Source of the DNA: Phaeosaccion multiseriatum
Taxonomy: Eukaryota > Protista > Ochrophyta, other classes
Assembly: GCA_965112735.1 (NCBI GenBank)
Contig: OZ218964.1
Coordinates: forward strand, 2,418,001-2,482,000
DNA length: 64,000 nt
Direction: 5' to 3'
Part shown: positions 26,987 to 47,665 of the stretch, one piece after another
Layout: each line of letters begins with the position of its first letter
Position numbering within the stretch: position 1 is the first letter of the stretch
Program-made: the position numbers and the translations under genes
Notes under the pieces: generated by a model
Databases searched by the model: none
Told to the model about the DNA's origin: nothing
The model's input: the letters and a program-made list of their open reading frames with translations, nothing else

Positions 26987-29900
26987 TCAGTGCGTCTTCA
27001 AAGCTCTCTCAGGTTCGAATGCTCCAACAAGCAAAGCCCCCCGTGCGTGTGTCCGCGTGCTCGGCACTGCCCCCCTGGGCGAGCAGCCTCTGAGAGGGCG
27101 GCTCCCCATTGAGGAAATCTCTCTGATCAAGCAGAACGTGCCCATCGCAGCGGCCGTAGTCGTGGTTCATGTTGTTGGAGCTGAGAGGGGGGAGGGGATG
27201 GGGTTAGAGGCATATGGGCAGGCAGGGAGTGGGGGAGGGGGGGGGTGAAGGGAGGGGGGAGGATGGGAGCGAGGGTGAGGAGGGGGTGAGCGAGTGAGGG
27301 ACGAGTTACACAGGTGGGCGGGTGGAGCGACACGGCACACACGTACCCACGCAAAATGCAACCCCCTGCACACTCACAGACAGCTTGACCCCAGCCTTCG
27401 CCCTGCACACTCACAGACAACAGCTTGACCCCAGCCTTCGCCCAAGCCTTCGCCCCAGTCAGCCACCTCTCGGGCCTCATGTGCCCAGCAGCCAAGTGCC
27501 CCCTCCCCCTCCCCCTTCCCCCTCTCGCACCTTTTAGCGGCGTCGCAGCGCACGGCCTCGAGCAAGGGGTGCTCCATGACGGGATCGTTGCCGGGGTACG
27601 GCTTGGAGATGGCGCGGCGCACACGAGACGCCTCTGTCGCATTGTCTCTTCGGTTAAAGTAGTGCGCGAAGCGGATGCCTGGTCCGGCCCCACCTCCCTC
27701 CCGGCTCGGAGTCCCTCCTTCTGCTGCTCCTCCCTCGTCTTCCTCCTCCCAGGCGGTAGGGCAGCAGCATGCCTCCACGGTGGTCTGTGATAGAGTCGTA
27801 TGGGGGTCGAGGGTGGCACGAGGAGAGGAGGCACAGGCGGGGATAAGACAAGGGAGACACGGGTCACCACATTGGGGATGGCAGCACATGGCAGTAGATC
27901 GATGGCAGTGGATGGCGGGGGATGGGATGGTGGGGAGTTGTGGGTTATGGTGCTGTGCTATGGTCACGTGCTGGCAGTGGCCGAGGCCGGCCACAAGCAC
28001 AAGAGCACCACGGCCACAACACTCCGATTCAGCCCAGCCGTGACCGGCAGCTTGACTGCCTGCCTTCCTGCCTTCCTGCCTTCCTCGCTACTCCCTCACC
28101 CACGCACCTTAAAGAACCACGTGGGCACATCCGGCGCGTCGAGGATGACTCTGCTGAAGGTGCTGTGTGTGTCCTGTGGCTGTGAGCAGTTGAGGCGGTC
28201 CATCATGTTGAGCAGCAAGTAGCAGCCCATGGAGTGCGCCCGCCTGCTCGTACGTACATACGAGGGTGCGTAAGGGTATGTAAGGGGTGAAAGAGAGCGG
28301 CACACGGAACGTCGCACGGCAGAGGAGGTGGTGCGTCCTCTCTGCTCCCTCCCTCTCTCTCTCTCTCTCTTCCTCTCCCTCCCTCCTTCTCTCCTCGCTC
28401 CTCTCCTCTCTCTTTCTCCCTTTCTCCCTCTCTCTCTCTCTCTTCCTCCCTCTCTCTCTTCCTCTCCCTCCCTCCTTCTCTCCTCGCTCCTGTCCTCTCT
28501 CTTCCTCTCCCTCCCTCCCTCCCTCCCTCCCTCACTCACTCACTCACTCACTCACCAGAGCATTTGCTTCCCCCCCGCCTTGGCGGCGCTTGCGATGTCT
28601 TTAGCCGCCTGTCAGGGGGAGACACACGCACACGCACACGCACACGCACACGCACACGCACACATGCATACACAGCAAAGTCAGTCAATGCAGCCCCACC
28701 AGAAATAGAGGCGTATGGGCCCATCAGGTCTTCGACATATCACCGTGAGGAGCGTCGGGATGACCAACATGTATATGGAGAGAGGGATAGAGTTGACCTA
28801 CATACATATGGAGGGAGAGATCGAGACAGAGGGACAGAGATAGAGAGAGAGGGAGACAGAGCCCCCCCCCCACCCCCTTTGACTGACTTCCCTCACTCAC
28901 TCACTCACTCACTCATTCACACACTCACTCACTCACTCACTCACTCACTCACTCACTCAATCACTCACTCACTCACTCACTCCCTCACTCCCTCCCTCAC
29001 TCACTCACTCACTCACCCACTCACTCACACACTCACTCACTCACTCACTCACTCACACACTAACTCACCGTGAGGAGCGGTAGGATCGAGGCGTGCATGT
29101 TCTGCTCACAGTACGTGTAGCGCCGCTCGTATGCGGTCATCACCTGTGGGTGGAGGCGTATGGGCGGGTGGAGGTGCCTAAGCTGCCGCAGCACAGGGAC
29201 GAGAGGAAGAGGGAGGACGCCTTCTTTTGCATCGCAGGCCCACGCACGCACACACGCTCGCACACACGCGCACACACACGCACACACACGCACGCACGCA
29301 CCTGCGCCAGTAGCCAGCCCCCCTTTCCCTCCGCGGCAGGGTCAGACGGCCAAGTCATCATGACTGACAGAGAGGGGCGAGCGGTCAGTGGGTGGGGGGG
29401 TGGGGGGCATGTGTACATCAAAGGTCAGCTTGAGGGTCAGGGGGAAGGTGAGGGTGAGGGTCAAGGTTAGGGCACGAGCACTCATCACGCGCACCACACC
29501 ACACAAACGACACGGAGTGCTCTGCATATCTGCGAGGGGCACGTCTCTCTCCCCCTCTCAGTCTCTCTCCCCCTCTCAGTCTCTCTCCCCCTCTCAGTCT
29601 GTCTCTCCCTCTCAGTCTCTCTCTCCCCCCCTCTCAGTCTCTCTCTCCCCCCCTCTCTCTCTCTCCCCCTCTCAAGTCTCTCTCCCCCTCTCCCCCTCTC
29701 AGTCTCTCTCCCATTCCCCCTCTCCCTCTCTCTCTCCTTCTCTCTCCCTCTCCCTCTCTCTCTCTCTCTTACCAGCAAGAGGCTGATAGTAAGCCCTCTG
29801 GAACACCACGGCGGTGCGGACGGCGAAGGCGAAGGACGTGTTGAAGCCGTGCAGCATGGACACGCAGTGAGGGGCAGGGTAGCGCCGCAACAGAGACAGC

Positions 29901-47665: not shown

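Follow-up and report, generated by a model that had tools for sequence, protein, structure and literature searches.

A Phaeosaccion multiseriatum locus that very probably encodes one protein with leucine-rich repeats, a divergent Roc-COR module and a C-terminal DUF900 hydrolase

Does one gene of the ochrophyte Phaeosaccion multiseriatum join leucine-rich repeats (LRRs) and a ROCO-type GTPase to an alpha/beta hydrolase in a single polypeptide? The question is raised by a stretch of 64,000 nucleotides (contig OZ218964.1 of assembly GCA_965112735.1, positions 2,418,001 to 2,482,000), referred to here as the window and numbered from its first letter. A first-pass annotation of the window had proposed such a protein and considered its architecture to be undescribed. 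The exon chain, together with collinear orthologues, upholds the first half of this proposal; the second half does not stand. We conclude that the locus is very probably a single intact ochrophyte gene that encodes LRRs of the ribonuclease-inhibitor type (RI-type), a divergent Roc domain, COR-A and COR-B parts interrupted by inserts, a linker of ~275 residues and a DUF900 serine hydrolase, and that it is an orthologue of the published 'group 4' ROCO genes.

The gene, with all of its exons, lies on the minus strand and runs from an ATG at 46887 to a TGA at 27009. The model comprises 30 exons, with a coding sequence of 7719 nucleotides (nt) and a product of 2572 residues. Each of the 29 introns is GT-AG, and the joined frame contains no stop before the terminal TGA at 27011-27009. 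From the exon that carries the P-loop to the stop, 17 exons form a single open frame with boundaries read in the DNA itself, and each junction is phase-consistent, with donors resembling G/GTGAG and CAG/ acceptors. The 13 upstream LRR exons were placed by homologue-guided boundaries, which are approximate for exons 5, 12 and 13. The N-termini of two orthologues, from Tribonema minus (KAG5192367.1, 2154 residues; P0016) and from a brown alga (g8764.t2 of EukProt, 2355 residues; P0031), align at the start codon. The first-pass annotation had located the gene correctly, but its span of 26987-47665 is trimmed at both ends by this coding sequence. The phase-consistent chain that it had drawn from LRR-ROC-COR to the hydrolase holds, and the junction 32633->32103 on which this chain turns was found exactly where it had been placed, with a GAG/GTGAGT donor, a CAG/ acceptor and phase 0.

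An exhaustive homologue search with the 45-residue AHSMG exon (28108-28242) as query returned 26 real relatives, and every one that was looked up and bore an organism name came from an ochrophyte stramenopile. The highest-scoring match, a Ranatra chinensis protein of 5520 residues (P0001; 85 bits), was rejected as spurious: it contained no matched stretch, and tblastn gave no match between it and the window. In both the T. minus protein and g8764.t2, an N-terminal LRR_6 match is paired with a C-terminal DUF900 match. We found that the window exons tile both proteins collinearly, over residues 1-2042 of the former and 16-2354 of the latter, and multiple alignments showed that they cover contiguous orthologue sequence with no gaps or overlaps at the exon ends. 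The critical junction was likewise bridged: the last 19-31 residues of exon 19 and the start of exon 20 (31971..32103) are adjacent residues in Chrysoparadoxa CAM9228622.1 (P0019; 383/384) and in g8764.t2 (1755/1756). On an environmental eukaryotic contig (L001; JGI 3300081709, Ga0672973_0006726; 584-8488), we also identified the same LRR_RI-Roc-COR-DUF900 gene in a form with hardly any introns. An uninterrupted open reading frame (ORF) of 1235 codons on this contig holds the end of Roc, COR-A, the COR-B block, the junction block, the linker and HGFN/WPS; an LRR_6 ORF lies upstream and the remainder of DUF900 downstream on the same strand. The fusion in this contig therefore needs no splicing inference. 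Brown algae, xanthophytes and Chrysoparadoxa all retain the fusion, with one orthologue per genome in the sources seen. The hydrolase with its linker also occurs in Phaeothamnion, and a dictyochophyte transcript encodes it too.

The linker is encoded by exon 20, exon 21 (31496..31677; matching P0016 1575-1609 and P0003 26-57), exon 22 (31243..31321; a YPLFLQF block matching P0019, P0013, P0003, P0014 and P0031) and exon 23 (30408..30836), which also contributes N-terminal strands ahead of the hydrolase core. Six hydrolase motifs had been proposed to follow in order on small open segments, and we found all of them within a few bases of their proposed places: HGFNTSF at 29851, MTWPS at 29358, AHSMG at 28239, DAPDV at 28140, YFNRRD at 27661 and NHDY...LNGEPPSQR at 27167/27113. 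The AHSMG exon alone scored 22.9 bits against Pfam PF05990, above the gathering cut-off of 20.5 (E=6.9e-5). The other hydrolase exons, too short when searched singly, gave no Pfam score. Six homologues that were scanned (P0016, P0019, P0017, P0003, P0013 and P0014) scored 51-61 bits for DUF900 and are 60-70% identical to the window in the AHSMG exon.

A profile built from homologues only matched seven hydrolase exons in order: exon 24 (29773..29931; HGFN motif; profile positions 37-91, E=2.4e-14), exon 25 (29302..29363; WPS motif; 90-115, E=6e-7), exon 26 (29069..29143; 112-138, E=3e-9; 64-80% identity to homologues), exon 27 (28556..28608; 137-155), exon 28 (28108..28243; nucleophile elbow AHSMG and DAPD; 156-199, E=1e-21), exon 29 (27531..27784; NRRD Asp and a loop insert of ~25 residues; 207-258, E=6e-17) and exon 30 (27009..27180; NHDY His, conserved C-terminus and the TGA; 258-293, E=9e-13), the last of which has a C-terminus that aligns with those of P0031 and P0014. 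Thus, E-values ranged from 1e-21 to 6e-7 for six of the seven exons. Exon 27, which encodes 17 residues, was weak alone but fills its gap in the profile and aligns to P0013 and P0031. Ordered matches of this kind far exceed chance. In an alignment with nine homologues, HGFN, WPS, HSMG, DAPD, N..D and NHDY were all conserved, and the catalytic set is kept: Ser in AHSMG, His in NHDY and two invariant Asp residues, in DAPD and NRRD, as candidates for the acid. The predicted fold of the orthologous domain (P0031:2050-2355, with the window exons in the alignment) was an alpha/beta hydrolase, with a predicted local distance difference test (pLDDT) of 90.8 and a predicted template-modelling score (pTM) of 0.90. 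Its structural neighbours formed a flat list of lipases, phospholipases and esterases (Z 12-15, best 15.1). The phospholipases among them included lysosomal phospholipase A2, hornet phospholipase A1 (Z 13.1 over 226 aligned residues), the type VI secretion effector Tle3 and PlaB. Pfam score, motif order and orthologue fold all agree with the DUF900-type alpha/beta hydrolase that the first-pass annotation had assigned.

At the other end of the protein, ~600 residues consist of RI-type LRRs. Exon 1 (46732..46887; residues 1-52) provides the start codon and the first repeat, on the basis of the aligned Met of P0016 and P0031, and has a donor score of 9.0. It is followed by exon 2 (46238..46334; in frame, 57-62% identity to P0016 53-89 and P0031 53-89), exon 3 (45678..45874; two RI-type LRRs, Pfam LRR_6 E=1.2e-5, 53% identity to P0016 82-153) and exon 4 (45134..45226; strong splice sites and LRR matches in P0016). 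Exon 5 (44746..44880; LRR) has a weak acceptor, and exon 6 (44245..44434; LRR region) is 44% identical to P0016 228-298. After an LRR in exon 7 (43397..43545), exon 8 (42976..43156) carries two RI-type LRRs with the best LRR_6 match (E=6e-9). Further LRRs are encoded by exon 9 (42546..42652), exon 10 (42154..42321; 43% identity to P0016 435-490) and exon 11 (40912..41055; 51% identity to P0031 498-554, with a single possible AG acceptor), which precede exons 12 (40282..40364) and 13 (40001..40100). A splice-site dynamic-programming model of the LRR region included a number of very small false exons while omitting real ones, and was superseded by the homologue-guided boundaries. An upstream ORF at 47665-47453 was also considered as the gene start and was discarded; it had neither homologue support nor a Pfam match.

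Between the repeats and the linker, we observed motifs of a putative Roc domain. Exon 14 (39554..39728) encodes the G1 P-loop, GDAGVGKT, and the switch-I Thr; it is 52-55% identical to P0016 595-645 and P0031 618-675, and gave only weak Pfam matches (Roc, AAA_16 and NACHT). Exon 15 (38850..39163) carries G3 (WDYGG, with the DYGG motif), preceded by a low-complexity insert. A degenerate G4 (VGSRAE) lies in exon 16 (38273..38483; 46-53% identity to orthologues) and a CRK-like G5 (LDCRKSQ) in exon 17 (37572..37646), a 75-nt exon that was added to the chain on homologue evidence (P0030) and keeps phase. The last Roc helix is encoded by exon 18 (36252..36337). In both orthologues, Pfam Roc was the best family match and spanned the whole model (E=0.004 and 0.037). 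Giant exon 19 (32633..35956; residues 888-1995) follows, with COR-A in its first ~110 residues, blocks resembling COR-B near 34650-34520 and 34123-33965, long Gly/Glu/Ser-rich inserts and a conserved C-terminal block that stops exactly at the donor. When the first 125 residues of exon 19 served as query in a language-model search, 17 of 20 matches were COR-A clusters (score 0.94); the same kind of search with the COR-B region gave a lead only (0.87). A PDB sequence search with COR-A produced only linker-like Gly/Ser matches. A word search with exon 19 found no relatives, because low-complexity words swamped the candidates.

Structure prediction pointed to the same family. AlphaFold, run on the Roc-COR region of the Tribonema protein with the window exons in the alignment, gave a model with a pLDDT of 61 overall and 70-88 in its folded parts. 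Foldseek placed LRRK1/LRRK2 in all of the best 18 matches (E down to 2e-10, with alignments of 660-730 columns), and VIA-align covered LRRK2 residues 1329-1852, that is, Roc and COR. The Roc part of the model adopted a small-GTPase fold (Z~15). We take the window protein to be a divergent ROCO.

Several observations weigh against a single gene that joins a ROCO to a hydrolase. At the join, an in-frame TGA (32611-32609) lies six codons beyond the exon-19 donor at 32633, so retention of intron 19 would yield an LRR-Roc-COR protein without the hydrolase. Public RNA runs share only 5-6% of the 31-letter words sampled from the window, at nearly equal levels in every run, which we read as common microsatellites rather than transcript support; because these runs gave no transcript evidence, the one-gene case rests on comparison. 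In the switch, G4 (38420-38403) reads SRAE, whereas Tribonema and the brown-algal orthologues have SRAD, so that the Asp of guanine specificity is replaced by Glu. The Pfam Roc matches of the two orthologues, at 17.7 and 14.7 bits, fall below the gathering score of 27, and Pfam COR was undetected in the window when single exons and the COR region were searched; the AHSMG, LRR and P-loop exons alone scored. Finally, both folds, hydrolase and Roc-COR, were modelled on orthologues and not on the joined protein of the window, and the function of DUF900 was termed unknown in a 2024 survey (PMC11878206).

The stop beyond the donor invites an alternative in which the ROCO ends at this TGA and a separate DUF900 gene starts from an ATG at 31318 in exon 22. 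Annotation of Ectocarpus sp. CCAP 1310/34 (L002; CACKRE030004999.1, 1-14823) would favour it, as the orthologous gene is given there as two models, of 1777 residues and of 387 residues with DUF900 (CAB1118442.1), and the shorter model begins at the equivalent of exon 22. Two more distant paralogues, P0017 and P0025, also have a start Met of their own and appear to be stand-alone proteins, which suggests that the hydrolase module exists by itself as well. However, the Ectocarpus split sits exactly on an intron. The two models are on one strand, with the 387-residue model 1.2 kb downstream of the other, and the annotated boundary is spanned by an alignment with the fused Nemacystus-type protein, whose residues 1988/1987 flank it. 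By these alignments, the Ectocarpus split is an annotation artefact. In the window, exons 20 and 21 are conserved and spliced in phase and contain no in-frame ATG, and so cannot begin a separate gene, and the uninterrupted ORF of L001 runs over COR and DUF900 alike. We consider two genes unlikely, and retain the one-gene model. Apart from the split, the Ectocarpus annotation misses the last exon, for which we found a match at 14671-14823, whereas the model ends at 14276.

A second alternative accepts one gene and disputes the switch: the nucleoside triphosphatase would be another P-loop protein, either STAND/NACHT-like or a generic small GTPase, and the protein no ROCO at all. The P-loop exon matches AAA_16, NACHT and Roc equally weakly, Pfam COR finds no match, and a profile search of the PDB ranked Rab proteins (E~0.02) before the Roc of LRRK2 (E~1). 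Yet brown-algal ROCOs likewise escape detection by Pfam COR (PMC11378527), and the non-Roc Pfam matches are restricted to the P-loop; those to NACHT and AAA_16 were weak and covered just 20 residues. The LRRs are N-terminal, where a STAND or nucleotide-binding LRR receptor (NACHT or NB-ARC) would carry them C-terminal to its NTPase domain. Both the DxxG motif and the small-GTPase fold predicted by the model fit Roc, LRRK1 and LRRK2 come first in the Foldseek ranking, and COR-A clusters dominate the language-model search. Additionally, UniRef labels the Tribonema orthologue a COR-domain protein, and the published ROCO survey includes g8764 (PMC11378527). This alternative is, in our judgement, very unlikely, and a divergent ROCO is the reading that we keep.

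That the locus is a decaying or non-functional copy, held open by chance in a stop-poor, GC-rich and repeat-rich region, is extremely improbable, for although the low-complexity inserts are very long, the G4 Asp has become Glu and the hydrolase has gained an insert of ~25 residues, 7719 nt stay open over 30 exons, all conserved motifs and the conserved C-terminus are retained, and the GC content at third codon positions is 0.71-0.88 in 10 of the 11 exons scored (exons 20-30; 0.56 in the 429-nt linker exon).

Is this architecture new? We found that it is not. A classification of 111 brown-algal ROCO genes (Front Plant Sci 2024; PMC11378527) defined a group 4 of three members whose LRRs are SM00368 (RI-type) and whose C-terminus bears DUF900 (IPR010297). 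Group 4 clusters with a diatom sequence that also carries DUF900, and probably existed already in the ancestor of stramenopiles, alveolates and Rhizaria (PMC11378527). Table S1 of the same study lists g8764.t1 (2356 residues) in its Nemacystus decipiens block, and this is the sister isoform of the g8764.t2 protein aligned here. The Tribonema orthologue, moreover, is already named 'COR domain-containing protein' in UniRef (UniRef100_A0A835ZHN6). The first-pass annotation had itself named common occurrence of the architecture in databases as a finding that would refute it, and the novelty claim falls, as LRR-Roc-COR-DUF900 is published for brown algae and a diatom (PMC11378527) and present in UniProt. 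The window gene has N-terminal RI-type LRRs and a DUF900 domain on the same predicted polypeptide as Roc, and on sequence grounds is an orthologue of the group 4 ROCOs.

The window protein shares with group 4 its RI-type LRRs, its putative Roc, a weakly detectable COR and the C-terminal DUF900. Compared with g8764.t2, it is collinear from residue 16 to the last residues, and the conserved blocks are 40-68% identical. The window protein belongs to a different ochrophyte, has SRAE rather than SRAD at G4 and is ~220 residues longer, owing to the Gly/Glu/Ser-rich inserts in the COR exon and the loop insert in the hydrolase. Tribonema KAG5192367.1, which is known from automatic annotation only, agrees with it in domain order, in both termini and in its Pfam LRR_6 and DUF900 matches, and is shorter. 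The LRR-Roc-COR order is also that of LRRK2, LRRK1 and the bacterial Roco proteins of C. tepidum and M. barkeri, which were the best structural matches of the orthologue model. By contrast, the output domain of the window protein is a DUF900 hydrolase where theirs is a kinase or absent, its LRRs are RI-type, and its sequence similarity to them lies below Pfam thresholds.

The hydrolase has relatives of another kind. 'Cinquedea', a hydrolase secreted by an archaeon, acts as a bactericidal phospholipase A, and 69% of its homologues carry DUF900 (bioRxiv 10.64898/2026.06.10.730825). DUF900 hydrolases, including the relatives of cinquedea, share HGFN, WPS, AHSMG, the alpha/beta fold and the Ser nucleophile with the window domain, and hornet phospholipase A1 recurs among the structural neighbours. 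Cinquedea-type DUF900 proteins are prokaryotic, stand-alone and often secreted, whereas that of the window is the C-terminal module of a 2572-residue signalling protein of cytosolic type.

How might such a protein work? In the mechanism that we propose, the conserved LRR domain would bind a conserved partner, the Roc-COR module would serve as a switch dependent on nucleotide and dimerisation, and this switch would gate a C-terminal serine esterase resembling a lipase or phospholipase. The substrates of this esterase would probably be lipids. Identity of the LRR exons to those of orthologues from other classes is 33-62%, which makes them as conserved as Roc and the hydrolase. Conserved repeats, together with a single orthologue per genome, favour a partner that is itself conserved and a function in housekeeping or signalling, and argue against a diversifying immune receptor. 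One possible explanation, offered tentatively, is that the protein is a non-diversifying ROCO acting as a GTP-gated phospholipase A or lipase, in which the conserved RI-type LRRs may respond to an endogenous partner and so govern cell death or signalling through membrane lipids. Were this the case, it would be the first ROCO with a lipid-hydrolase output in place of a kinase, and would give DUF900 its first eukaryotic function. What we contribute here is a careful gene model and a comparative case that the join is conserved, the catalytic residues intact and the LRRs not variable, together with the demonstration that in at least one public case, Ectocarpus CCAP 1310/34, the annotation divides this gene at an intron. 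The family would offer a tractable system for how a ROCO switch regulates an enzyme other than a kinase.

The region surrounding the exons is ~60% GC and eukaryotic in character, and the introns are rich in microsatellites. Most of intron 17 is filled by a tandem array of 108 copies of a 10-mer (1066 nt; 36484-37549), and microsatellites (CA, GA, CAGA, CTCA and similar) make up the greater part of many further introns. A GA/CT-rich tract at 28398-28494 falls within intron 27, outside the gene model. We found no second copy of the gene within the window. Its upstream neighbour on the same strand (48432-49880, minus) is an ankyrin-repeat gene, and on the other side a coiled-coil-like ORF (26139-26867, plus) ends 139 nt from the stop codon, such that the two 3' ends converge.

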